From positions 15,883,208 through 15,947,207 of the forward strand of contig OU015568.1 in NCBI GenBank assembly GCA_907165135.1: a stretch of DNA of 64,000 nucleotides, in the 5' to 3' direction. Source of the DNA: Oikopleura dioica. Lineage: Eukaryota; Animalia; Chordata. Made by a program: the position numbers and the translations under genes. Each line of letters begins with the position of its first letter. The first letter of the stretch is position 1. Shown here piece by piece: positions 4,781-48,254 of the stretch. The notes under the pieces were generated by a model that was not told the DNA's origin, did no database searches, and saw only the letters and a list, made by a program, of their open reading frames with translations.

Positions 4781-5573
4781 TCAACTCTGGCTCGGGTCCG
4801 GGGTCAAGCGGATGTATCCTTTTCCAGATGGAAGAGAGGCCTTTTCGAAGCCCTTTGCGAATCGCTTCGTCGCTTGCTCATCGGTCAACGATGGAACAAC
4901 CATGCACCTGAACACGGGTCAGAAAGGGAAATGAGACTGGAAATTTACTTGTCGCCTGACTTCCAGTTCTGAGGTGTGGCTACTTTGTGGAGGGCAGTTA
5001 ATTGAAGAGATTTAACAACGCGAATAATTTCGTCAAAGTTTCGACCAGTGGTGGCAGGGTAGAGGAGAGAGAGTTTGAGTTTTCTGTCTGGTCCAATGAC
5101 AAATACAGCTCTGGCGGTCAAAGGAGTTCCCTGGAAATATTGAAATGACGCACTGGGTAAGAAGGACTTACAGTGGAGTCAAGCTCGTCGGGGTCAAGCA
5201 TGCCAAGTTGGGTGGCGATTGTTCGGTCGTCTGAGATAAGAGGGAAGGGAAAGCCGCCTTCGAGTTTGTTGTAGTCTTGGATATCTTTGATCCATCCTTC
5301 GTGATCGGCCATGGTATCAATAGAGAGCCCAATCAACTTTGTGTTGAGCTCTTTGAACTCTGGCGCGTACTTGGCGGCGGCTCCAAGTTCGGTGGTGCAA
5401 ACTGGAGTGTAATCAGCTGGATGCGAAAAAAGAATACCCTAAACGTAAATTTTCTTTTACAAAAATTGTGAAACTCTTACCCAAGACTCTCCGAGGTAGT
5501 CATAAAGATTCAAGTTTCCCCATGTCGTCTTCATCGACAAGTTTGGGAAGGTATCGCCGAGCTTCAAAGACAT
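4781..5573 (-). CDS. PRDX6: 1-Cys peroxiredoxin (peroxiredoxin-6), 4 exons
   Basis: Spliced translation [12 protein letters not shown]...[19 protein letters not shown]...IGLSID...FPFPLISD...[39 protein letters not shown]...[11 protein letters not shown]. Contains the PVCTTE active-site motif. Confidence 0.95.
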
Positions 5574-5578
5574 CTTTT

Positions 5579-5584
5579 CTGAAA
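5579..5584 (-). promoter_or_regulatory. Putative spliced-leader trans-splice acceptor (TTTCAG) 5 nt upstream of the PRDX6 ATG
   Basis: Minus strand reads AAAATTTCAG|AAAAG ATG, about 200 nt downstream of the stop of the upstream same-strand gene. Similar acceptors precede ATGs at 48254 and 53849. Confidence 0.55.
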
Positions 5585-5786
5585 TTTTGAGGAAGGTGAT
5601 TATTGAGTTTTTCTTTTTAATTTAGTTAATTTTTCAGTGAGATAGTTTTTTGGTAGTGATAATGAGTTTTTGTTTGCTGCTTTTAAAAATAAATAAAATT
5701 GCTAAAGGCAGTGGTGAATATAAACGTCAATAAAATGCTAAAAAAGGTGAGGTGTGAGTTTGAAGAAATTTGAAAATTTTCCATTT

Positions 5787-8041
5787 TCAGTAAAACAATT
5801 CTTTTAAATTTTTTGGATCTGCCAGAGACGATACCATGTACGGTATTCCCGCAGAAGTGAAGAAGACTGGTTCTCCACGGCCGTATTCGAATGCGTTTAC
5901 TTCTCTCCTGAACATACCGGTACTTAGAGAACTCAAGCGGAAAGAAGTAGATGCTCAAGGGCGTTTTACTTACGGATTGTTACTTATTACGCTTCCCGAC
6001 AGATAGCTTTTCCAGCCTGTTGCTCTCTGGATGAGCACTTTCTTTGCGTTCTCGTTTCCTCTCCTGGCCTGAATGGATAGCAAGTGCCACACTTCCGCCA
6101 ACGCCGTCCGGTTGTTTTGCTCGATTTCGATGATCGGGCCGACTCCAAGTCGAAGCACTTGCGTGGCGATGCGAACATTGCTCGGCGATGGGGTATTTAT
6201 AAGAGTGAGCAAGAGCGACGGCAGAAGCTTTGAGAAGATCTGTATTCTCGCTGGCTTGCCGTTCTCAATGCTCGGAATGAGGAAATTCACCAGAAGCTCC
6301 GCGATGAACATCGTCAGTGTTTGAAGCCTCTAAAATTGGAAAACTGAGGACGAAACAGGGAACTCTGAGGCTACCTCTCTTTCGGATATTTCCATTGATT
6401 TGGCGAACTCGTCTTTCTTCCTGAACTCTTTCTGGAGCATCATCAGCAAAATCGTCCTGAAGCCTTTCTCGTTCTCTCCTTTTTTGATCTTGAGACAGAT
6501 TTCTGCGACTAATTTCGACGCGATGTGGCAGAATGGAATATCGCAGACACTAAAATACACAATTAAGGGTATAGTCGTCGATTTGGCCGATTTCAGAGGG
6601 TTATAACTCGGGACTTGGAATATGTGAGAGGCTCTAAAATAGCTCAAATAAAATATCTATCCTAGATCTCACTTTTCTCACAGCCTTTTACGTATTTTCC
6701 AAGGAAATATTTGTTTGCTGATCGCTCAAAGTTGAGCTTTCGGCCAAATAACGCCAAAATAGCCTCTTTTCAAGGCGTTATAAGTCCGAAGTTTCTAAAT
6801 AGACCTATTGATTCTATATAATTTTCTTAAAATATAGACCCATATCTTAAAAATGACACAGCCTTATACTGTAATCATAAAATTTTCTTTGAAAAATTTT
6901 TAAAAGAACCAAGGTACCAATTTTTGACCTTTCAGATTGATAATGTGCCCTGCGGGCATAGCCCAAACTTATCCTAAGGGGTCCCAAATAAATGCTCTGA
7001 ATATAAGCTTTCAAAAAATGTATCATATGGCACCCTTACAATGCCCCTAAAAATGGTCAAAATTTCAAATTATTCGGCTTATGGCAAAATACACTAAATT
7101 TTGCCACTTTCAAACGCAATTTGCCGCCAAATGGGTTGAGATAGCCAAAATAATCATGAGGGGTTTTTTGCTCAGAATTTTATGGGGATTCTAAAAATAT
7201 GCTCAGATTACAAATTGGAGACCCTACCAAAATCGATGACTATACCCTAGGATCGACAAATGCCCCCGAAATCCGGATCGGGTTTTCATCGGATTTTCTT
7301 GAGCTCTGATTTTTCCGATCGGGTTTTTGTCGGGTTTTCGTCGGGTTTTTGTCGGGTTTTTTATCGGGTTTTTGTAGGATTTTTTTCGGGTTTTTGTCGG
7401 GTATTTTTCGGGTTTTCATCGGGTCTTTGTCGGGTTCTCGTCGGGTTTTCACAACACTGAAGTTAAATCAAATAAATTGAACCCAAATCGGCGAAAATAG
7501 ACATAATTTTTGGCTAACAGAAGTTTTGGTGCCCTCTTTAAAGAAACTGATGAGGAGATACGATGAGAAACCCGACAAAAATACCCTACAAAAACCCGAT
7601 AAATGACCCTACAAAAATCCGATTTTGTAGGGTCGTCAAAATTTCAACGTCGGGTTTTTGTAGGGTAGGCAGAATCCAACAAAAACCCGACAAAAACGTC
7701 GGTTTTCGATCGGGTGTCGGGTGGGACTTGTCGATCCTAGACTATACCCTTAAAACATCATAAAGGTTTGTAAAGGTCCTTTTCAGCGGTCAAAGCAAGA
7801 CTTACCATGTATTATAAATTGTTTCCGCGACATATTCCATGAATTCGTCGCCGAATCCATTCGCGCCCATGATAATCGTGCTTATCAAGCAATCGAGCAT
7901 ACTGTCGAAATCGGCTGGGTACTTGAGGAGACGATAAATCGCCTCGTTGAGGATATTCTTCATGTTGAAAAGTCTCTGCGCATCTTCTAAAAAATATCTC
8001 AATTTTGAAAAAAAAAGAAAGAAGTTAGGAGCGAAAGGCAA
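5787..8041 (-). CDS. PAIP1: MIF4G-domain protein, PAIP1-like; start uncertain
   Basis: MIF4G-type helices (FRTILLMMLQKEF, MFIAELLVNF). The last exon reads EPVFFTSAGIPYMVSSLADPKNLKELFY*, resembling the PAIP1 C-terminal EPTFYTSDGVPF motif recalled from memory. Confidence 0.7.
6567..7749. mobile_element. Non-autonomous DNA transposon with TTAA target duplication (Kolobok-like), inside a PAIP1-like intron
   Basis: Left end TTAA|GGGTATAGTCGTCGATTTGG (6563-6586). Right end CCAAAATCGATGACTATACCC|TTAA, seen once the nested MITE is removed. Confidence 0.8.
7247..7740. mobile_element. Foldback-type MITE with 8-bp TSD (hAT-like), inserted in the right TIR of the TTAA element
   Basis: TIR CTAGGATCGACAA / TTGTCGATCCTAG. 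TSD ACTATACC at 7239-7246 and 7741-7748. Inverted subterminal arrays of GTCGGGTTTTT / AAAAACCCGAC. Confidence 0.9.
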
Positions 8042-27463: not shown

Positions 27464-30449
27464 CTAAAAATCAATTCGAGCAGGAACCTTTTCTGGATGA
27501 AGATATTTGTACGGAACTCTCCACGATTTGTTTCTGAACACATTAAAATATTCAGAAGACTTATAAAACTAGTACCTCTCGTCAATTTTTACTCCGATTT
27601 CTTGAATTTCCTTTGTGAATTGCTCTTGAATTTGCTGAGCGTTTTCTTCTTTGAGCAGTTTCATTGGAAATTCACCGAGATAGACCTTGAAAGTTTCAAG
27701 TTAAAAAAGACTAACCCTAACCCTAACCCTAACACTGTACATAGTTATCTAGAGTTACCTCAGTAGGTGGCGGTGTACTTAATGAGATAGTGACGCCCAT
27801 CTGAAGGACCATTCCGTCTTGATCGGGAAGTGTATTCATGATGTCCTCCATAGTTGCTGATTTATCGGCTGGTGCAGGCTGTCGGAGCAAAAAGGGATGA
27901 TGGGCTGTGTTTCCATAGATGTCGAACATTGGATAGCCGTCTGCGGCATGCTGCACGCTGGAGGAGAAAATGATTCCAGTTAGAAGATGAATCAGGTTAT
28001 CCTTGAAGTGTTTTAGTTAGTGAGAAAGGGAGCTCTTGTCCGTACTCTTGTGTCAATCTCGTTGAGTTTGACATCATCCGCATTTGAAAAGCCATAGTTC
28101 TGAAAAAAAAATGTGAAAAAAACGATGTCGATTTTTATCCTCGCCAACATTTGCTTCTTTGATCCAGTTTTGTAGCTCGCTGTCTTGGGCCAAATCATCG
28201 TCGCTTTTGTAATACAGCTCTATTATGCCACGGACATATTTTTTAATCGCAGCCCAGTAGAGAAGCGAATCGTCACGGTAGCCGAATTCTTTTATCTAAA
28301 AATCATCTCTTATTTACTTGATTCGTGAGTTTGATACTGGGCTCGGAAACTTTTGTAGAAAATCTGAGTCAGGGTCTGAAAGAGCTTAGCTGAAAAGCCG
28401 CGCAGCGGCTTTTAAAAAACCAAGCCGCTAAGCGGCTTCGCGATTATTACCATTACAATCTAGGAAAAATTCCGCGCGGCTTTTTATTTAAGCTCTTTCA
28501 GACCCTGACTCAGGTTTTCTACACAGCTTGCCGAGCCCAGGTTTGGTTACTCCGACCTTGTCGTCGAGAAGACCTCGCTTTTCGAGATTCTTCGGAACAT
28601 CGAAATCGTCGATTGTCCATTTTTTAAGCCCTCTTTGCATTAGTTGAACATGGCCTCCACCACCTTGAAAGAATTTGTCAAATATTTGGAAGAAAGCGTC
28701 CTGTTTTACCAAGTGAAAAGCCCATATCGCTCAAGGCACCAGAAGCGAGTAAACCGTTCCTTCCGTAGACATTGCTGTTGACGACATGCTAGGTAAAAGT
28801 TGACTATTGGCTTTTATCGGAAAAAAATACCAGCAAATGAGGAAACATCAAGCAAAAAAGAGGATGATTTCGCGAAACACAACGTCGGAGAGCAATGGCA
28901 AATGGTTCCGCTGTAAAATGGCAGCCGAGTAGATGCATGTTCAGTTGCTGGAACTGTCCATTGGCACTATTGAAGAATATTTTCGCCAACATCCAGGCAT
29001 TTGGCGGATCCTTTGGTGTAAAGACAGGGTTGTCTTCCGCCTTGTTTGAGAATAGCTGAATGGCGAGGGGCTCAAGATACCCTTCACTGTTGCAGTAAAG
29101 AACAAGCAGGGGCGACGACGTGTATCTTCCCTGCATGCACGGAATGCCTTCGAGAATCGAGTTGTCGACCATGTAAATACGTCCATCAGCTACAGCACTT
29201 TCAAAAGTGACACCCTCTGGCAAGCATTTCTCCAAATCCGCAGTGGGGATGTTGTAGTAGTCTGGAAGACTTTCAAAGACTTTCTCCACCCCTCTCGGGC
29301 TAAATTTTTACTTGAGACTAGTTCAAATAATAATGATTTTTTTACCTGCATCCGTTAATTTGCTGACGGGCAAATTCAGCGTCAGTTCTTAAATACGATT
29401 AAAAATTTTTAAATAATAAAGATAAAATCGTACTGCCATTCATTCCAGCAAGTTGAGCAATCCAACGCTCGCTCTTTCATCCAAGGCATAAGCAAGAGCT
29501 TGTTCACATCGTCCAATGAGTCGAAGTTTCGAAAAACCCCGGTGAATTTAGTCAGAAGAATACTGGAAGTAATGGCGCCCTTCCAGCTTCTGAAAAAGTC
29601 GTCGCGCTCAGCTGACCACTGGGTGTTCCTGTCAAGATCCTCGAATTTATCTGCTGTTAAATGACCAGTCAGCGAGTATTCGATGTTTTCTATTTTTTCC
29701 CATTCATTGATTCGTTGCTGTTCTGCGAGATAGTCTTCGCGAAAGTTTTGCTTGACAAAAGTACTTTCATTTTGGGGCAGAAAAGGTGTGCTCTCGGCTC
29801 TCGTCGATCCGTTTTTAACCCACTCGTAGAAGGGGAAGCAAAATTCGTCCGACTTTTATGGGTTCATCTGGCTTGGGCCCCTTATGAGGGAGCCTTACCT
29901 CGTTGCTGAGCGGTAGGCGTAAAAATTCGTTCTACGCCAATATGTATGCCGTATTTCGAGCCTCAGGGCGTGTCGGAGCAGCGAAACTGCTACGCGCTCA
30001 GCAACGGGTTAAAATCTAATTTCGGCGGTTCAAGGAACCAGTCCTTTGCGATAACGGTAACAAAGTCGACATACCAGTCGGGAGAAATACCTTTATCATC
30101 AATCACTAAACCTCAAATAGAACAAATTTCAAAAACAAGATCTTTTACAAATTTTGCAAAGAAGTGGCTTCCCAATATCCTCCATTTCGACATCGAACTC
30201 GTCTAACTCGCCCTTTTGAAAGTCATTTCTAAGAGACTTATCGATTGTTGTTGGAGTTGTTTGGCCCGTCTCTCCGATGAGCTGAATTTTTATATCCGCA
30301 TCTGTGCCGGCTTTCTTCGTGTTTCCAGTTTTCACGACGATTTTGTAAGGTATTCGTCCAGTGAGAGAAGCCTTTCGCTGCGAAGGTCCCGCGTCGTCGA
30401 CAACACATAATCTTTGGCAGCAGTCTAGTAGTCCATCAGTCGAGTCCAT
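27464..30449 (-). CDS. Animal-type lipoxygenase (PLAT plus catalytic domain)
   Basis: PLAT domain YKIVVKTGNTKKAGTDADIKIQLIGETG. Catalytic motifs YLEPLAIQL, WMLAKIFF, HLLGCHFTAEPF, HPLFCLMFPHL, GGGGHVQLMQR, YRDDSLLLW, QHAA and YKYLHPEKVPARIDF*. Confidence 0.93.
27711..27733. repeat. Interstitial telomeric tract (CCCTAA)n; further tracts at 12893-12906, 30634-30660, 33767-33792, 33861-33877 and 55496-55512
   Basis: Direct reading of 2-4 TTAGGG/CCCTAA units at each site. Confidence 0.9.
28337..28540. mobile_element. MITE family 1 copy in a lipoxygenase intron
   Basis: TIRs CTGGGCTCGGAAAC...CTTGCCGAGCCCAG. Degenerate TSD GTTTGATA/GTTTGGTT. Confidence 0.85.
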
Positions 30450-37066: not shown

Positions 37067-37622
37067 TTTCTCGAGACTCTTCGACGGCTAAAAAGTAATC
37101 CATCAATAACACCGACAGTTACTATCGGTTTAAACCGATCTTCAAAACGCAGCCCCTATAGCCATGTATGAATATTAATTATTTCTAAAATTATGGGAAA
37201 ATTAATTACTAATCACCTACTGAAATCGGACTGGGCAATGAGCTACTCCTTCGTTTGCTAATTAAAAAGTCAATGGACGATAACCGTGGCCGTTCTGTCA
37301 TTCTGAGCTCTCTCTTTGACTGTAAAAAAAATCCTGCAATTCAATGCACCGCAATCTGATACCAGGCTTTCGCTTGCTTTTGTCTTATTTTTTCGTTGAA
37401 AAGGGCCGAAAATAACGGATAAAATTACCTCTGTTTCAGGAAAGACACTTCTGGACACAAATTTTAACATGACTCCCTGTGCCGAACAAAGCTAACTATC
37501 AATCCCTATCTTAATTGCTTCTGTGAGTCCTTGGATCGCTGCTTTTTGCTTACAAGGCACTCAGGTTCCGCTAGGAAATGGAGAAGTACCTATTGATTGA
37601 TGTCTCTTCTGACGAAAATATT

Positions 37623-40600
37623 TTAGGAAGCGGTTGAACTTTGAACTTGAGATTTATTAAAGAAAGATAAAGAATAAGTTAAACGAAGATATCTAGAATT
37701 TTTTCTTGGTGTCGATGGTGGAGGAGGCGACGACTTCTGAGACCTTGTGAGTGATAGACTGACCAGTGACAAGCGTAAATCGAAGCTCAAAGGAATCCAC
37801 TTGCGGCGCGCCTTTCCAGTAAAAGCTATCGATGGTGCCGAATTCCATGCTTTTCCACGCCCCATCGCCCTTTTTGATCTAATATTGATGCTAAGAAAAG
37901 TATTCGAAAGGAAAATTGTACCTCGATAGACTTCATTTTGTGCTTGTGGTTGAGCGGCATGACGGCCAGCCACCATTTGGAACTTCCTTCTTTGATATGG
38001 AATTCAAAAGTGTCCTTCATCATGAATCTGTCAGGGCACTCGATAAATTTCCAATTCGCCTTGAATCGCGAATGACCAGCGTTTCCTGAGACTTTGTCCC
38101 ATGCCGCGTTGCTCAAGTCCAAGTCGCCTTCGTGGCATTCTGGGCAGCTGTCGACCACCATCGCTACTGTCGTTTTTCCGGCATCGCAGTTGGTCCCGAC
38201 ATTACCAGCTGTACAGTCGATTTCAACGCATCGTCCGCAGTTGGCTCCCTTTTCCCACATTGGCTTTGGCAAAGCAACGAAATATTTTGTCGTCTCGTCG
38301 CTGAATTTGGGGTAGCCGCAGTTGCCACCGTCGGGTTTTTCCGCGTAAACAGTGATATCGCCCTTGTGAAGCTTTCCGCCGCTAGCATTTTGCCAAAGTG
38401 GTGAATTATTACTCCAATTTCGGGCAGTTGTAGCTGTTGGCTTGGTTTTTGGTTTTGTCGTAGTCTTCATCGGTTTTGGGGTTGTTTTCTGAGCTGGACG
38501 AGCAGTCGTTTTTGCTGGCGCTTTTCCTGCATGCACCGATTTCAAAGAAGCTGAGTCAATGACAAACGAACGGCTAGGTGGAGGTCCCTCGATATAGATT
38601 CGAATGTTCTTGACATCCTGAACTTTGTAGTCGAAACTGATGGTACCGGAAAGACGAGTCCATTGTTTAGGTCTTGCTTGAACGCTTGCAATTGGCTTCC
38701 AGACTGGTTTACCGGATTTGAATTCAATATTTGCAGTCATGATGAATCTAAAGGATAGCTTAGGAAGGATTTATGGCTATGAGCTAATTTTGCTAAACTA
38801 TGAATTTTATATTATGATGATAGAATGAGTGAAATCGTGAGTAAATGTACTGTATTGTTAGTTTTGTGTAATAATGAAATGAATACTACAAAAAACTTAC
38901 GAGAAGAAGGACATTTTATTTTCTAAAATCTGATAAATTATCTTTCCCGATATAAAACTTACTTCTCAGCTTTTTGATCATTTCCCTGCGGACGTATGTA
39001 AACTTCCGCAATATAATCATTTCCAGGAAGAAGATCCTTGCCAAAAACAAAATCCTGTGCTGGACCAGCCCAAGCGCCCAGTCTTGATTCGACCTTGTAT
39101 CCAGCTTTTCCACTTTGAGCTGCCCATGGGAAAGCAACTCGACTTCCCTTGCAGCCGTTGCAAATCCATCCGTGGTGACCATTTTCGAAGTCTCCATTTT
39201 TGAATTCTTGAGCGCTAGTATCTTTTGAAGCCGTAGCTTTTGTTGGCAAAGGAGCAGATGATGAGCTAGAACCGTGGCTGCTCTTTGCTGGCGGAAGGGG
39301 CAAGTCAATACTTGGGCGAGCGTAATTTCGAACTGTGCAATCGCCACCAAGTAATTTGCACTTGACTCCAGCTGCTAAGCCCTGGAATGCAGCATTATAG
39401 TCTGTGGCTACTTCATTAGCAATGTAGTCCTTGCGGCTGTCTGTATATCGATCTTGCTCGTTTGGCCCGCCGACAAGTGCTCCAAAAAGAACCCAAGGAG
39501 CGGGGCCACGCCCAGATTGCGCCCAGTCACATGTTTTTGGCTTTGCTGGACAACTTGATCCTCGATGATGAGGCTCTTTTGGTGGACTTTTACCAAAACC
39601 AACGACGTAACTTCTGCCTGTGCTTCCAAGAGCGTAATTTAGCTGTTTCTGGGCAAATTGAAAATATTGGCTGGCTTTTGGAAGCTTTGGTTCCGCCATG
39701 GCAGCTTGTAAAGCCATAAATGCGATGTTAGAAGCGTGTCTCAGTGGGGCCCACTTTTGAACGTAGATCATTCCTTTTGGCGTTTTACGCTGTCGTAAAG
39801 CACTGTCGACGTATTTTGCCAAGTGCGTTGCATATTTTGGATTCTTGGTCGCTTGAAGCATGACTGCCATGGTTCCGGGCTTCTTGGAATCCCAGGTTGA
39901 TTCAACTCCCGAGTACTGGATGCCGAAATTATTATAATCTCGCTCCGCAATAGCCTTCCATTTTGAATCCCCAGAAGCTCTGTAAATCCACGCCGAAGCC
40001 CATGCGATTTCGTCTTTGTAGCCCCAAGATTTGTAAAACTCAGTAATCATCGGAATCGCGCTATTGTAATCTTTTTGGTAGTTCTTGGCGAGTGCGTAGA
40101 GTTCGCGCGCATGAGCTAAATATTCATCAGCCAGTTTTGGGTTACTTTCCCGGAAAAGCAAAGATCCAGCAGCAAGCGCTGCAGCGGATTCGCCGACGAC
40201 ATCGGAGCCGGGATTTTTCGGTGAGATGATGTAGGTTGGTCTGTTCATTCGCATCTCTTCAGCTCTGCCCCAGTATTCGTGGTCTTTTTTCGCATTGCCG
40301 ATTTGAGCAACAAACTGGTCTTTTGCAATGTGACATTTGACGAAGTAATCCAGAGTCCATTTGACTTGAGCAAGAGCGTTTTCATATTCGCCAGCTGCTT
40401 TGTAAGCGTCACCGTATTCGATGATTCCCCAGGTGAGTGTCGTTGTTGACCAAGCCATTGGCAAACCGAACTTAACGTAATCACCAGCGTCGTACCACCC
40501 GCCAGTAAGATCTCTTCCGATGTCACATCCATCGTTGAGGCCGCTATCTCCTCGCCATTTTACTCGATTGTCTTCCGGAAGCTCACCAGATCGCTGAGCT

Positions 40601-42017
40601 TCGTAAAACAGAATCGACTTGGCGATAACTTCGTTCAAGTCGTATTTTGTCTTCGCTACCTCTTCTTTTGAAGCCTTTTTGAAAGTTGGCTTGGTTGCAG
40701 ATTGGGATTTAAGATTTCCTCCGGCTCTAGAGCAATGATCTTTTGAGGCCTTGTTGTAGGAGATTTTTCCAAAATCTACGTCTGAAGACACAGTTTTGGG
40801 GGGATTTGCCGGCTTGGTGCTTGGTGAAGTTGTCGTTTTTTCACTTGTGGGTCTGTTAATTATTGATGGTTTTGGAGCTGGCTTGGTCTGAACATGCTTT
40901 TGAGGGGGTGCTTTAGTTGGTTGGGCTTTTGCAGGCGACGAGGTAGCACTAGATCCACCGTTAATTCCGTCGTGGCACCACCAAGTCGTTGCCTTGACTC
41001 CACCGCTTTCCGCTTTCGCCAAAAAGTCGAAATTGAATTTGCTGTCGAGAACTTTGTTGTAAGACATCGGCAGGAGCTCCCAAGTCTTCCCATCGTCAGA
41101 GATCTTTTTGGCTTTGCTTTCCAGCTTTGGAAGCCACTCACAGCAGTGTTGAACTCAACGATAATCTTCCAATTGGAAACTCTTCCGGAGACAGGCATCC
41201 AGCCAAAAGCGTTGAACTGGTGGGCGCCTTTGTCGAACCATTCTGAGATTTTAGTGAATAAATAACAAAGAAAGAGATTTCTTACGAGCTCGAATAATGA
41301 GTCCAGATTGATTGTCGACGTTCTTGAGCTTCTTACAATTACTTCTGGCGGAATCTTCTGTAGACGCCGCTGATGTTGTTGTTTTAGCTGTAGTTGTCGT
41401 GGCCTTTGTTGTGGTGGTTTTAGCTGTGGTTGTAGTTGTTGTCGCCCTGGTTGTCGTCGTTTTCGTTGTCGTCGATTTCGGTGTGGTTTTTACCGGTTTT
41501 TGAGTTGTTTCCGGCAAAGCCATTTCCGCTGTCTCATTCTGTTTAGAGAGAACAGAAACTTTTCTAAAATTCGCGCAGCGTTTTTTCTTACCCTTCGCGA
41601 AAATTTTCACGACATCGCCTTTCACAGCCTTTTTGCAATTGAACACGATCTTGGGCGCGTTTTCTTTTGCGAGGCGGCGAAGGACTTGGGTAGACAGCTT
41701 TTTTCCACAAGTTTTTCCGTTCACGCTTGCCGTCAGGCCGATGTAGTTCTGAAGATGATATATTAATTTGAATTCAATATTAATATATTCTTGGAGTCTT
41801 TTCTTTCTCTTTCCTTGGCCGCTTTGAGCGTGAAATCTTCCATTTGCAGCTGAATTTCTTCCACTTCCGTCTCATTTTCAAGCTTTATCTCTAGTCCCGA
41901 TCCAATGTTCTCACTATTACAGGGTTTCTCGACAGTGGTACTCTCGAGAGCCGCCTGAGTCGTCTCATTCTGGGCAAAAATCCCCGACGAGCCGAGTAAA
42001 ATCGGAAGAAGTTTCAT
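37623..42017 (-). CDS. Secreted modular cellulase: signal peptide, Thr-rich linker, CBM2-like, GH9, CBM4/22-like, expansin (DPBB plus CBM63)
   Basis: GH9 motifs DLTGGWYDAGDYVKFGLPMA, PHHRGSSCP and NEVATDYNA. CBM-type NGDFENG...W...WAGPAQD...WTRLSGT. Expansin-type GGNCGY...NCGRCVEI...VVDSCPECHEGDLDLS...KEGSSKWWLAV. One 1-nt frameshift near 41110. Confidence 0.88.
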
Positions 42018-43258
42018 CTTTTTCAGATTTTCTTCCGCACTGCTCCTTATCGAAAAAGGGATCGCAGAGAAAATGAGGTGTTATTTTCTGCTTCGTCTAT
42101 CGTCGAAACGTAATTATGCCCGGCGGGGGTCCTAATATTCTTTTTCCATGGAATTGAGTACTAAGTATTTTTTGTAAATAGAACTTCGCGGCTACGAAGA
42201 GTTAGACGGTGTTGAATCAGTCGTAACTAGTTTTTGGCGAAATTGAAGCTGGAAAAATATATACAGAAAATGGAGGAGATTAGCAACAGATGCTCAGAGC
42301 TCTCCCTAACCGGATTTTGTCCTTGAATCGCACTAAAGAGTCTCTTCTTGGTTCTCGATGATGTTTCCGACAGGTGAGGCCCCGAACAAACAGAGAAAGG
42401 CCTCCGGCCGCTCAATGGTAGTTTTCTTTCAGAAGACACGTTCCATAGTGATTTTGGATTAATTTCTTGCTAATAATGCCGCCCGTTCTAATTTCGAGCA
42501 CGCTTGTTCCCACCCCCTTATTTGCTCCTGCTCCTGTGCACTCAGCGCCGTGACACTGTTGATGTTAGTATTGCTTTCAGAGAAAGTGTTATTGCGAGAA
42601 AAATGGTAGTCAACAATTACACGACATCTAAGAAGCTAGAAAGATGGGTAAGCTGAGTGCATGTTCCTCCAGTTTTGAGTTTCATGTTAAAAAGTTTCCA
42701 CAAAGTGAGGGCTGATTTTAGAAAGAATACAGAAAAATAATGACTGTCAGCAACTATCAAGAGTATAAGAAAGCGTTACGATGGGTTTTTTTAATCGTTA
42801 TCAAAAGATTTTTAACAAAAGTATTTTAAGGATCACATGATTCGACACAGTCCTCTAAAACAATCCGCCGGGACAAGAGAACTTCCACTTTTCACCCCAA
42901 AGCCGTACCGAATAACGCCAAAGTCGACGAAAGATATTATGAGAGAGCAGAATTTCATCAACGATTCTGTCAAAGGTAGAACATTAAAAACTGTCCACTA
43001 TCGAAATATGCTTAGCGACAAAGCAAGCTCGAGCAGCACGACAGCCACTTAATCCAGAGTACGACGGGAGCAAAGGTGTGCGCGTAAAACGTCGATTCAA
43101 TTGTTAACTTATCGTTCAGATAAGATGACACGTTCTTTCTCCATGTCTCCTGTCCGGCAGCAACTTCCGAGGTCAGAATCGACTTTTCGAATGTATCAAG
43201 ATTCTACAAGTTCATACAATCCATCTGAGTATTCTCTCCCACCTTCGGTAAGAGATTT

Positions 43259-43885: not shown

Positions 43886-44721
43886 ATTTACATGTAGGGC
43901 ATTCGTGCTTTTCCTTCAGCCATGGATCGATACAGTCTTTGTGCAGAATATGAAGACATGGAAGACGGCGGACTTCGTCGTCTCGTGCGAGATCGTCCAT
44001 GCAAACCGGGCAGCTGTATTCAGTGAAAGCTTCTCTCAACCGCTGAGTTGGTAGAGCCTCTATTTGAGCGGGATGAAGACCTTGAGGTCGCCTAAAAATA
44101 GTTGTTAGTAAAAAATATTCCTCTTGTATTGTTACCCTTGAATGATCATCTGAAGTAGTCCTGCAAATAGTTCGTGGAGTCTTTCATCGACATCAACATC
44201 TTCATCAGAAGACGAAGAGTCTTGATCATTTTCAGAAGAATCTGTCGGTTGAATTTCAATGAGTGAATCGTTGTTTGAAGGAGTAGGTTGTTCGTTTCTC
44301 CCGTCATCGTCAAAAATCATCGATTCTAGGGTATTTGAAGGTGACGCTGACTTATGTTTACTTTACGTCTGACTGGTAGGTCGCTGAATTCAGGGACATT
44401 TGTAATATTTTGAGACTCGGGCTGCGGCATAAACTGTCGCGGCAGTTCTTGTCTGTTAGACAATTCTTCATCCGCTCTTTGGCAAATTCGACGAATTTCT
44501 GTGACATTTGAAATGTCGCTTTCGTTTCTCCTCGTTGTTGGCGGTTGATAGCCGCAAACCGATTGTTCTGGTCTTCTTGTTGGCTCGTGATTCTGTTCGT
44601 CTGTTCCATTCAGCTGCTCGTGAAGTCTTCTTGCCATAGCTTCATCGGACTCATACTGATCCACAAGTCTAATCGCTTCTCTAGTGGTAGCAGTCGGATC
44701 ATAACTCTGCCACGGATCCAT
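43845..44721 (-). CDS. RING-H2 E3 ligase, copy C (divergent)
   Basis: CPVCMDDLARDDEVRRLPCLHILHKDCIDPWLKEKHECPTC. N-terminal SDEAMARRLHEQ. Confidence 0.85.
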
Positions 44722-45012
44722 TTAAAATCTTGAATGTTTTCTCGTCCCTCTTACTGTTCTCTACAACTTATGCTGTTGATAAGAATCTTGTTCGTGACAA
44801 TATTTGCATTTGCCCTGTTTTAACGATTTTGACAGCCAATGCGATTAGCGTTTGGATTATGAAAAGGGAAAGGGGACAAATAGAACGTCTAACATAGAAG
44901 TGGCTTTTGTGCAGTGAATCTATTCGAGTTTATTATCAATATTTTTGCAAAATGTGTGATTTTCAGTGAGTTTTTTCTAGTGATAGTTCTGGCCTATAGA
45001 ACCAGCTTCATT

Positions 45013-46258
45013 TTACATGGCGGAGGAAATGTCGAACTTGCAGATCGGACATTCTTTGCTCTTCTTCAGCCATGGATCGATGCAGCCTTTGTGCAGCACG
45101 TGGAGACATGGAAGACGTCGAATCTCGTTGTTGGTCGCCATATCATCCATGCAAACTGGACAGGTGTCCCCTGCGATTGTCTCGTCTAGCGACTGGGACG
45201 GAAGGCGATTGATCTGGTCTTGACGAAGTCCGAGCCCTACCGCTGAATGCTGAGCAGTTGGCCGTGTGAAAGCAGGAGGACGGAATTGAGATAATGCCGA
45301 GGTAGATGCCCCTGGAGTAGCTCCAATGGAAGACGAAGCTTGACCAACTCGATTGTTCGTTTGCAATGCATTAATGAATGAGTCATCAGAGTCGTACGTC
45401 GATGAAGATGCATTGAGAAGCGCTTCCCCAGTGTCTTCCTCTTCGCTATCCTCTGGCAAATTATCTGGCTGTCTTCGTGGAGGGCTGGACATAGCATTCC
45501 GTCGATGCTCGTTAGCGTTCGAACGAACCTGCAAAATCTTGATTTTCAATCTTTGTCTTTGAAGTTACCTGTCCCGATGTTCCTGGAGCTCTACCCGATA
45601 TTTGAGGATGAATTGAGCGAATCGGGCTTCTATCTCTTTCGTCCTCCTCGTCCATTTCTTGAATCAGTCGCTCGGCATCTCGCACCAGTGCCTGCAAATG
45701 TGCGCGTGACGCAGCAGATTCCGCTGTTGTATTGTGACTTGTGTCCATCGACTCGTTGTTCTCGTCCTCATCTTCTTCGTCGTCGCTTCCTGTCAAATCA
45801 ATGACGTCCTCATCTGAAAAGCGAGTAATTTTTCACCTTTCAAAGTTATTGAGTACTTACTTATCGGTGGCAAATCCGTAGTAATTCGAACGCTCCGTCC
45901 AATAACTGCTGTTGACGAAGTCGGACCTAAACTCGGATCTCACATGTTCTGTAATCATAAAAACGATTTGTTCATTATTTGTTTCTAGCAGTTTTTAGTG
46001 GTAGAAAAGATCCGAGCCTGGAGATTCAAAATCAAATTCTGTGCCATTCTGGAGTTGTCGGGCGAGGGCTTCATCCCTTTCGAACTGCTCGACTAGGCGA
46101 ATCGCATCTTTACGGGGTTGTTTATTTTTTCGAGAAAAAGGTTGGAAAATTAACAGATTTAAGAAGAATTGCCACAAAAATTAATTCATGAAATTTAACA
46201 TTTAGATTCTACCCCTCCCTATAGTCGTATTGAAGTTATCACTAGAGCTTTGACTCAT
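45013..46258 (-). CDS. RING-H2 E3 ligase, copy B
   Basis: Start MSQSSSDNFNTT, then DEALARQLQ, EDVIDLTG and CPVCMDDMATNNEIRRLPCLHVLHKGCIDPWLKKSKECPIC. Confidence 0.85.
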
Positions 46259-46737
46259 CTCTCAAATCTCTCTGCCAAAAGGAGAAAAATCCTGTTTTTC
46301 AAAATAATCGCAGGAAAGTGGCTGACTGATTTACGAAATGAGAGCGCGCGCTTCTGTGATGTCTCCTCAGATTGGCAGATCGCTGTTTTCGACTCCAACG
46401 AATTTCTTCGCAAAGCGGAACGATCCAAATTTTAAAACTAAATGACTCAACCGAAGAAGCGCCTTCGAGATTTGAAGTTCTCGAAACATTTGTTTTTTTG
46501 GTAGTTTATTCAGAACACCTCTGCTGATGCTTCCCCAATTTAGTAACCCTGCTCCTGACTCAGGAATCCTGACAAAGTTCGACTCTGCTGTGTATGACAC
46601 TTTGATAAGAGAGATAAGGTAGATGAATTGACTGTTGTGCGGTGAATCTATTCAAGTTTATTATCATTTTATTTGCAGAATTTGTGATTTTCAGTGAGTT
46701 TTCTAGTGATAATTTTGCCCTAAGGAAGAGCCTCGTT

Positions 46738-48254
46738 TTACATGGCGGAGGAAATGTCGAACTTGCAGATCGGACATTCTTTGCTATTCTTCAGCCATGG
46801 GTCGATGCAGCCTTTGTGTAGCACGTGGAGACATGGAAGACGTCGAACCTCGTTGTTGGTCGCCATTTCGTCCATGCAAACTGGACAGGTGTCGCCTGCG
46901 AGTGTCTCGTCCAGCGACTGGGAGGGGAGGCGATTGATCTGGTCTTGACGAAGTCCGACCCTAAATAGTGATTTGTGAGAATAGATAAAATTACCGTAAA
47001 CGTACTTGTGATCTTGAAGATTCAGGAGGCGCTCATATGAAGATCCTTGCAAGGGAAATCCACTGCCAGGACCTCCTCGGACGATAGACATTGAAGAAGT
47101 TGCAGACCGGTCACCGCCACTTGAAGTGCTCATGGAGAACAGCAAGTTTGACCCGCCACTGGAGCCGCCAGTTCCTCTAGTTAAAGTTTGTCGCGTGAAA
47201 GCAGGAGGACGGAATGGGTTTGATACCGAAGAAGATGGTCCTGCATTATTCGCTCCAGAGTAGGAAGGAGCTTGCCGAACTCGATTGTTCGTTGCGACCA
47301 TCGAGGCATCAGCATCGTTGATGAAAGAGTCTTCAATATCGTAGTCGTTGGACTCGTTGAAAAGCGCTTCCTCAGTGTCTTCCTCTTCTCCAGCCACTGG
47401 CAAATCATCTGGATGTCTTCGAGGAGGGCTGGGAAAAGCATTCCGTCGATGCTCATCTGCGTTCCAACGGAACAAAGTCCGCGAACGACCCTGAAAAATC
47501 TCGATTTTCGATCTTTGTTTTTGAATTTACCTGTCCAGATGTGCCGGAAGCCGTTCTCCGAGGCCGTATATGGCGAATAATTGGGCTTCTATCTCTCTCG
47601 TTCTCTTCCTCGACCATTTCTTGCATCAGTCTTCGGGCCATGGCCTCGTCACTCTCTATCTGTGCGTTGGAAGCAGATGATCCCGCTGTTGTATTGTGAC
47701 TAGTGTCCATCGACTCGTTGCTCTCGTCTTCGTCCTCTTCGTCGCCGCTTACTGTCAAATCAATGACGTCCTCATCTGAAAAGGGAGTAATTTTTCGCCT
47801 TTCAAAATTACTGAATACTCAGACTCAGTATTCAGAATACTCACCTATCGCTGGCAAATCCGTGGTAATTCGAATGCTTCGTCCAATAACGGTCCTTGAC
47901 GAACTGGGACCTGAACTCTGATCTCATTAGCTCGATGATCATTAAGCTATTTGTTCGTTCATTGTTACTATCAATCTGTTCGTCATAAAAGAGATCCGAG
48001 CCTGGAGCTTCAGAATCGGATTCGGCTCCATTTTGAAGTTGTCTGGCGAGGGCTTCATCCCTTTCGTACTGCTCTACCAGACGAATAGCATCTTTACGGG
48101 GTCGTTTATTCTATGTAAGATCTTTCAATAAACATAAATGATAAATTTAAATAAAGAAAAAGTATATTTATTAAATAAAAAATTAGAAAATCAAAATCTA
48201 TATCTGGCCCCTTCCTAGAGTCGAATTGAAGTTATCAGTGGAACTCTGACTCAT
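46738..48254 (-). CDS. RING-H2 E3 ligase, copy A (Arkadia/RNF165/RNF38-like)
   Basis: Start MSQSSTDNFNST, then DEALARQLQ, EDVIDLTV, SDEAMARRL, SYERLLNLQD and a C-terminal RING-H2. Confidence 0.85.

Follow-up and report, generated by a model that had tools for sequence, protein, structure and literature searches.

A GH9 endoglucanase with a C-terminal expansin in Oikopleura dioica, a candidate for remodelling the cellulose of the larvacean house

Introduction

What is an expansin doing at the end of an animal cellulase? The question is raised by one gene, g12962, in a stretch of 64,000 nucleotides from the larvacean Oikopleura dioica (assembly GCA_907165135.1, contig OU015568.1, positions 15,883,208 to 15,947,207 of the forward strand), which was analysed as a whole and is called the window below. 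On its minus strand lies a gene of about 1319 codons in which a GH9 endoglucanase is followed by a CBM_4_9 module and an expansin. To our knowledge, no animals other than tunicates build with cellulose, and larvaceans rebuild their house many times per day. The pairing of an expansin with an endoglucanase occurs in other organisms, as separate proteins in plants and as fusions in some plant-associated bacteria. An original prediction, made from the letters of the window alone, proposed that such a fusion inflates, remodels or recycles the house, and that its expansin and CBM modules may have been acquired from microbes. Here we ask whether the gene is real and intact, where its modules came from, and what the protein is likely to do.

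The GH9-expansin fusion is real but already known, since it is annotated in NCBI and UniProt with domain matches and has been mentioned in two preprints. The exon 3 frame (731 residues) is 100% identical to the NCBI model Oidioi.mRNA.OKI2018_I69.PAR.g12962.t2 (P0001), a protein of 1232 residues from a 17.09-Mb scaffold that carries the UniRef name ‘Endoglucanase’ and precomputed Pfam matches to PF00759, PF02018 and PF03330. The window therefore belongs to the Okinawa reference assembly, OKI2018_I69. The best AlphaFold DB match of our expansin model is UniProt E4XG49, an ‘Endoglucanase’ of 1223 residues with 83% identity over its last 203 residues, which we take from its accession series to be the Bergen O. 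dioica protein. Chase et al. (bioRxiv 2019, 10.1101/637728) state that O. dioica ‘contains an annotated expansin gene’ and leave contamination possible; the fusions they list involve CBM1, CBM2 and GH5, and GH9 is absent from their text. Leon et al. (bioRxiv 2026, 10.64898/2026.03.31.715263) treat ‘gh9-expansin’ as one gene in single-cell data and suggest that it acts by ‘relaxing cellulose fibers’; in the accessible parts of that preprint it receives one sentence, with no domain map, CBM_4_9, phylogeny or other species. The gene of Leon et al., E4XG49 and g12962.t2 are the same gene or orthologs, each with GH9 and a C-terminal expansin. To these records we add a corrected gene model that takes account of a frameshift in the assembly and removes a false intron, the pattern of conservation among larvaceans, and the mixed ancestry of the modules.

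Results

One spliced gene

Frame and splice analysis of the window gives a five-exon gene on the minus strand, from 42017 to 37693 (Table 1). The coding sequence is 3957 nucleotides plus the stop codon, and its sole stop is terminal if one frameshift position, treated in the Discussion, is read as X. GT..AG boundaries are found in introns 2 to 4, the second being 43 nucleotides long, and only intron 1 differs, with GA..AG; the automatic annotation uses the same four junctions. An AATAAA lies about 35 nucleotides downstream of the stop in exon 5. The hydrophobic N-terminus was judged by eye to be a probable signal peptide, and it is followed by an N-terminal module, a Thr-rich linker, a CBM2-like module, a second linker, GH9, CBM_4_9, a third linker and a two-domain EXLX-type expansin. 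Every module named in the original prediction is present where it was placed.

Internal evidence for a continuous product comes from CBM_4_9, which is interrupted by intron 3. Unspliced, its two halves match Pfam at E=2.9e-5 and 0.03; spliced where AEK meets FIMTANIEF, they match PF02018 at E=7e-15 and 56 bits, against a gathering score of 25.9 bits, over profile positions 4-134 of 136. The full match appears only when the intron is removed, which speaks for the joining of exons 3 and 4, in the frame that the original prediction had proposed. The second half of CBM_4_9, a Thr/Pro/Lys-rich linker and expansin domain 1 (D1) then share one uninterrupted exon. The split module, this shared exon, the annotated models, an open exon in a Tara contig described below and the one-gene treatment of Leon et al. 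together support a single polypeptide that would carry GH9, CBM_4_9 and a full expansin.

The N-terminal module (residues 22-125) matched no Pfam family; its Atlas neighbours point to CBM_2, but with scores of at most 0.64, which is chance level. The Thr-rich linker of exon 2 has a weak match to Pfam Mucin, and its frame is also open in an orthologous metagenome contig (L001).

Identity of the modules

The catalytic domain belongs to GH9, with a full-length match to PF00759 (E=8e-134 to 2.5e-134, profile positions 3-443 of 444), and its nearest solved structure is the termite endoglucanase NtEgl (1KS8, E=3.5e-138). The motifs on which the original prediction had relied, DAGD, HHR and the Glu of NEVATDYN, are all present, and their Asp, Asp and Glu align with Asp54, Asp57 and Glu412 of 1KS8, which we take to be its catalytic residues (the Asp pair as base, the Glu as acid). 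Judged by these residues, the GH9 endoglucanase should be catalytically complete. For CBM_4_9, a search of solved structures by sequence gave no relative; its Atlas neighbours are bacterial CBM_4_9 clusters, which in itself is no evidence of transfer.

The C-terminal 233 residues form a full two-domain expansin, as had been claimed. DPBB_1 scores 33.9-36.5 bits (gathering score 28.8) and Expansin_C 25.1 bits (gathering score 24.6), and both Pfam and the structural model place D1 before domain 2 (D2), the order of EXLX expansins. By sequence, the top solved relative is Bacillus subtilis YoaJ/EXLX1 (BsEXLX1; E=5e-15), followed by other microbial expansins. The AlphaFold2 model has a predicted local distance difference test score (pLDDT) of 95.5 and a predicted template modelling score (pTM) of 0.90, with 88 homologs in the alignment, and its 12 best PDB matches are without exception expansins with two domains, of fungal, bacterial or plant origin, at template modelling (TM) scores of 0.70-0.79. 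BsEXLX1 (2BH0/3D30) and a Talaromyces expansin (7WVR) share the fold at TM 0.75-0.79, with only 22-23% identity in the structural alignment.

An HMMER alignment to 2BH0 shows what has been kept at the residue level. Asp71, Glu75, Asp82, Lys119, Trp125 and Trp126 of BsEXLX1 are all retained, the two tryptophans within the GSSKWW motif, and Tyr73 is replaced by Cys. We take loosening by BsEXLX1 to depend on Asp82, with Asp71 and Glu75, in D1, and its aromatic cellulose-binding platform on D2 to consist of Trp125, Trp126 and Tyr157. A Phe-Tyr-Trp run lies 3 to 5 residues past the position of Tyr157. Unlike BsEXLX1 and 7WVR, the larvacean D1 has six conserved cysteines, which are invariant or nearly so among its eukaryotic relatives, the Tyr157 position is occupied by Ile, and the expansin is one module of a 1319-residue enzyme.

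The Trp-rich CBM2-like module, which spans from a Cys in exon 2 to a WWC motif in exon 3, is present where it was predicted, and its assignment to CBM2 is weak (Pfam E=0.017). Its AlphaFold2 model (pLDDT 87.4) has as top PDB match the Cellulomonas fimi CBM2 6QFS, at TM 0.64 and E=1.5e-3; the other fold matches are archaeal and bacterial CBM2 chitin-binding domains, and none reaches E<1e-3. In sequence it can be aligned both to the modules at the N-terminus of ascidian GH9 proteins and to the Pfam-positive CBM_2 modules of a marine eukaryote protein (P0303, below). The label is weakly supported, and we call the module CBM2-like and claim no membership of CBM2.

Conservation in larvaceans and a tunicate core

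Two contigs stand close to the O. dioica gene. Contig L001 (76% identity) shares synteny with the window on the upstream side of the gene, and its source is therefore a close relative; a Logan contig from SRR7620404 (L006) covers the end of GH9, CBM_4_9 and the expansin, with 80% and 68% identity over two aligned pieces. Four Tara contigs (L002, L003-L005; GC content 36-37%) are more distant, with 50-53% identity over the expansin part. They encode the CBM2-like module and GH9 in several exons (gaps of 32-71 nucleotides), followed directly by a linker and the expansin, and CBM_4_9 had no match in them; in L002 a single open exon runs from the last segment of GH9 through the linker to the expansin. 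The GH9-expansin is conserved in at least two more larvacean-like lineages, from marine metagenomes, that lack CBM_4_9. The restriction of CBM_4_9 to the O. dioica group may reflect either a later insertion there or a loss in the other lineage.

A GH9 tree of 121 rows (quick search, with support from the Shimodaira-Hasegawa-like approximate likelihood ratio test, SH-aLRT, only) places the core among tunicates. The GH9 domains of the window, the L001 ortholog (P0002), L002 and L003 form one clade (SH-aLRT 100), whose sister comprises 13 rows, among them every named ascidian sequence except one, and the resulting 17-row tunicate clade has a support of 97. Ascidian GH9 proteins from Styela (P0014), Phallusia (P0018), Clavelina (P0105) and Ciona (P0010) have an orthologous CBM2-like module, linker and GH9 at 36-50% identity, and have no CBM_4_9 and no expansin. 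Their match to P0001 begins at about residue 131 and runs to 763, ending after GH9 near their own C-terminus. Since the GH9 tree has this shape and ascidian orthologs share both modules, the CBM2-like and GH9 core was inherited vertically from a tunicate ancestor, and the CBM2-like module is not a recent acquisition from microbes. The expansin at the C-terminus is a later gain of the larvacean lineage.

We also considered whether the architecture might be common across animals, and rejected this; among the best 120 GH9 matches, P0001 alone has DPBB_1.

Relatives of the expansin

A HMMER search with 166 expansin residues returned 1095 representatives at E<=0.001. Past the larvacean-like sequences, the best named matches are Lagenidium (163 bits), Ptychodera flava (126), Aphanomyces (103-113), Mastigamoeba (111) and Saccoglossus (94), and B. 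subtilis EXLX1 reaches 59 bits, with a longer query. Organism names from 30 matches that were looked up numbered 14, all of them eukaryotes (oomycetes, Archamoebae, a fungus and hemichordates); it is on these 14 names and the bit scores that we call the expansin closer to eukaryotes. No relative of the expansin emerged when bacterial genomes, one for each species, were searched, and word-indexed searches with the expansin part returned only close environmental relatives and P0001 itself. A direct or recent bacterial source is not indicated, because eukaryotic relatives outscore B. subtilis EXLX1 (108-163 against 59 bits), and the scores argue against one. To this extent the original proposal of a microbial acquisition needs to be changed.

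In a quick, unrooted tree of 139 domain rows, built without bacterial rows, the six larvacean-like expansins group together (support 98), and their sister group (86) consists of 15 environmental marine rows. One of these is P0303, which is 737 residues long, begins with a hydrophobic stretch and carries three CBM2-like modules (Pfam CBM_2, E=3.6e-16) besides its expansin. Its source is L009, positions 81-2294, a marine eukaryote transcript from JGI sample 3300018965; the CBM2-like modules sit on acidic Thr/Glu linkers, and there are faint matches to the arthropod GD_N domain. The nearest expansin relatives past larvaceans would be multi-CBM2 proteins of marine eukaryotes, followed by oomycetes and not by bacteria.

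The expectation that animal expansin-like genes are known mainly from plant-parasitic nematodes does not hold. Ptychodera flava (P0128; XP_070533744.1) and Saccoglossus kowalevskii (P0152/P0314; XP_006812919.2/APU50764.1) both have genes with two tandem full expansins, so deuterostomes beyond tunicates carry expansins, and Chase et al. (10.1101/637728) list bivalves. The hemichordate D1+D2 expansins are 36% identical to the larvacean one over the matched parts. In contrast to it they stand alone, with no glycoside hydrolase, and in the quick tree they group with Archamoebae and not with larvaceans.

Several further expansin-bearing sequences were encountered. An 8.3-kb contig of 35% GC (L007), which also holds an anillin/PH gene, has at 4900-7371 (P0132) an expansin exon after Thr-rich linkers and repeated Cys-rich modules, and is possibly a further multi-module expansin gene of larvacean-like type that lacks GH9. 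In an ENA contig of 2129 nucleotides (P0133), one open reading frame runs from the C-terminal end of a Cu/Zn superoxide dismutase through a Thr/Gln linker into an expansin; this may be a genuine fusion or an artefact of gene calling. A Logan contig of 2780 nucleotides (P0131) encodes 875 residues in which three DPBB/expansin-D1-like modules alternate with Sushi-like modules; it is animal-like in look and has a very long branch in the tree. At rank 9 of the Atlas neighbours of the expansin is a cluster of 53 Nucleocytoviricota proteins (score 0.89), no more than a hint that expansin-like genes may occur in giant viruses.

Setting of the gene

Contamination was considered and rejected, given the chromosome-scale scaffold, the tiny spliceosomal introns, even DNA depth over the gene and its flanks, and ordinary eukaryotic neighbours. 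We conclude that g12962 is one intact nuclear gene of O. dioica.

Elsewhere in the window, tandem RING-H2 finger genes lie upstream on the minus strand at 44326-47475 (zf-RING_2, E about 3e-14, two copies), a third RING-H2-like stretch near 43850-44090 matches L001, and a lipoxygenase fragment is found at 28804-29289.

Table 1. Features of the GH9-expansin gene, in the direction of transcription (window coordinates)
Feature	Position	Strand	Remarks
Exon 1	41814..42017	-	Start codon at 42017; opens the small N-terminal module; residues 1-68 of annotated P0001
Intron 1	41749..41813	-	65 nucleotides, non-canonical GA..AG; junction as in annotated P0001
Exon 2	41286..41748	-	Remainder of N-terminal module, Thr-rich mucin-like linker, first CBM2-like strand
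Thr-rich mucin-like linker	about 41598-41365	-	In exon 2; skipped by annotated isoform t2
CBM2-like module, first strand	from about 41337	-	In exon 2
Exon 3	38963-41242	-	Frame and splice analysis
CBM2-like module, exon 3 part	40975..41242	-	Cys to Cys, Trp-rich; Pfam, AlphaFold2, ascidian alignment
A5 homopolymer	41105..41109	-	Reading frame of the window breaks here, inside the CBM2-like module
GH9 catalytic domain	39376..40632	-	PF00759; 1KS8 match; tunicate clade of GH9 tree
CBM_4_9, first part	38963..39204	-	End of exon 3; Pfam
Intron 3	38748..38962	-	215 nucleotides, GTAAGT..TTTAG, phase 2; interrupts CBM_4_9
Exon 4	37922-38747	-	CBM_4_9 second part, linker, expansin D1, start of D2
CBM_4_9, second part	38576..38747	-	Start of exon 4; Pfam; then Thr/Pro/Lys-rich linker
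Expansin domain 1 (DPBB)	38009..38347	-	DPBB_1; six conserved Cys; GDLDLS Asp
Expansin domain 2 (CBM63-like), first part	37922..38008	-	GSSKWW motif; Expansin_C, fold match
Intron 4	37879..37921	-	43 nucleotides, GT..AG
Exon 5	37693..37878	-	Remaining expansin domain 2 and stop codon; Expansin_C match spans the junction

Discussion

We consider it probable, with good but not complete confidence, that this gene encodes an intact secreted GH9-expansin of about 1319 residues that remodels the cellulose of the larvacean house. Secretion, cellulose binding, loosening and cutting would all follow from what is known of the constituent families. The oikoplastic epithelium, in its posterior Fol cells, would secrete the protein into the forming house, where the CBMs and expansin D2 would dock it on cellulose microfibrils. 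The expansin could then loosen or separate fibrils without hydrolysis while the tethered GH9 cuts exposed beta-1,4-glucan chains, so that the cellulose scaffold would be trimmed, thinned or relaxed as the house rudiment is built and expands. A house role for the fusion, proposed in the original prediction, is independently backed by the enrichment of gh9-expansin in posterior Fol cells of the house-making epithelium reported by Leon et al. (10.64898/2026.03.31.715263).

Several observations weigh against this account. The expression evidence comes from one preprint, and from a different, Norwegian lineage. We compared positions 37400-42300 with two bulk RNA-seq runs, one single-cell RNA run and one DNA run; the three RNA runs, labelled as the same species, yielded only 9-31 partial reads, which were 90-95% identical and showed no joints, and are therefore uninformative on splicing. 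These RNA runs probably come from another cryptic lineage. The CBM2-like module scores 15.9 bits with Pfam CBM_2 (PF00553) against a gathering score of 24, a value obtained on the exon 3 part of the intact ortholog, without the first strand. Within the expansin, an Ile aligns with Tyr157, the third aromatic of the binding platform of BsEXLX1. Finally, the depth table of the DNA run leaves room for reads with the five-base version of the homopolymer at which the reading frame breaks.

A first alternative is that the enzyme works as a KORRIGAN-like GH9 that serves cellulose synthesis, setting chain length and crystallinity at the synthase, with the expansin and CBMs only as anchors. Cellulases aid cellulose production in plants and bacteria (PMC10986139), and Leon et al. 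frame GH9 enzymes as setting polymer length during synthesis. We find this improbable for the present protein, which has no transmembrane anchor, ends in an expansin, and keeps in D1 the loosening residues Asp71, Glu75 and Asp82 of BsEXLX1.

It is also unlikely, and slightly more so, that the protein is a digestive enzyme, secreted into the gut, where it would break open prey with cellulose walls (green algae and thecate dinoflagellates, for example) and digest them. Foreign walls are the target of most animal GH9 enzymes and of bacterial fusions of expansin and cellulase, the nearest solved GH9 enzymes are digestive ones from termites, earthworms and polychaetes, and Chase et al. (10.1101/637728) tie bivalve expansins to algal diets. 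The Fol-cell enrichment reported by Leon et al. counts against a gut function, and remodelling of house cellulose is favoured over digestion. The bacterial GH5-EXLX (Xanthomonadaceae) and CBM2-EXLX fusions described by Chase et al. likewise combine an EXLX expansin with endoglucanase or cellulose-binding modules. The larvacean gene differs from them in that its catalytic family is GH9 and not GH5, in its spliceosomal introns, in an expansin nearer to eukaryotic than to bacterial EXLX, and in its host, a chordate that makes its own cellulose.

The last alternative concerns the integrity of the gene. The original prediction missed the frameshift at the A5 homopolymer. A high-depth contig of DNA run X25, which includes 92% of the locus words, carries an extra T behind 41104, at a depth of 185.9 of 322.2; the L001 ortholog, 78% identical as a protein, has no frame break and reads ...KGKPKKLSDDG..., and the OKI2018_I69 assembly is Nanopore-based according to the title of PMC8008620. 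The most likely cause of the frameshift is therefore an error of Nanopore sequencing at the homopolymer; at most it marks one allele, and we do not read the gene as a pseudogene. The annotated g12962.t2 drops 13 residues at this point through an artificial intron and omits 74 residues of the Thr-rich linker, and is shorter than our model by both. That the frameshift is real and the gene broken in this individual, leaving the signal peptide and N-terminal modules uncoupled and a pseudogene or truncated product, would agree with the window sequence as given and with a summed depth at the homopolymer above that of the extra-base contig, but is highly improbable in view of the frame-restoring base, the lack of any other defect in the remaining coding sequence of about 4 kb, the intact orthologs and the Nanopore origin of the assembly.

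The history of the gene can be sketched, tentatively. It is possible, though we would not call it likely, that the gene was assembled stepwise, a tunicate gene with CBM2-like and GH9 modules having captured an expansin by eukaryote-to-larvacean (or virus-mediated) transfer before larvaceans split, and CBM_4_9 having been inserted later in the O. dioica group. The vertical GH9 core and the eukaryotic relatives of the expansin narrow the question of where the expansin module came from.

Overall, a secreted expansin-cellulase is an obvious candidate for shaping and expanding the house scaffold, and its encoding by one gene offers a simple handle for knockdown and biochemistry. If the stepwise assembly is true, the fusion would be a lineage-defining innovation for the house filters, and would amount to a plant-like wall-loosening tool in a chordate.

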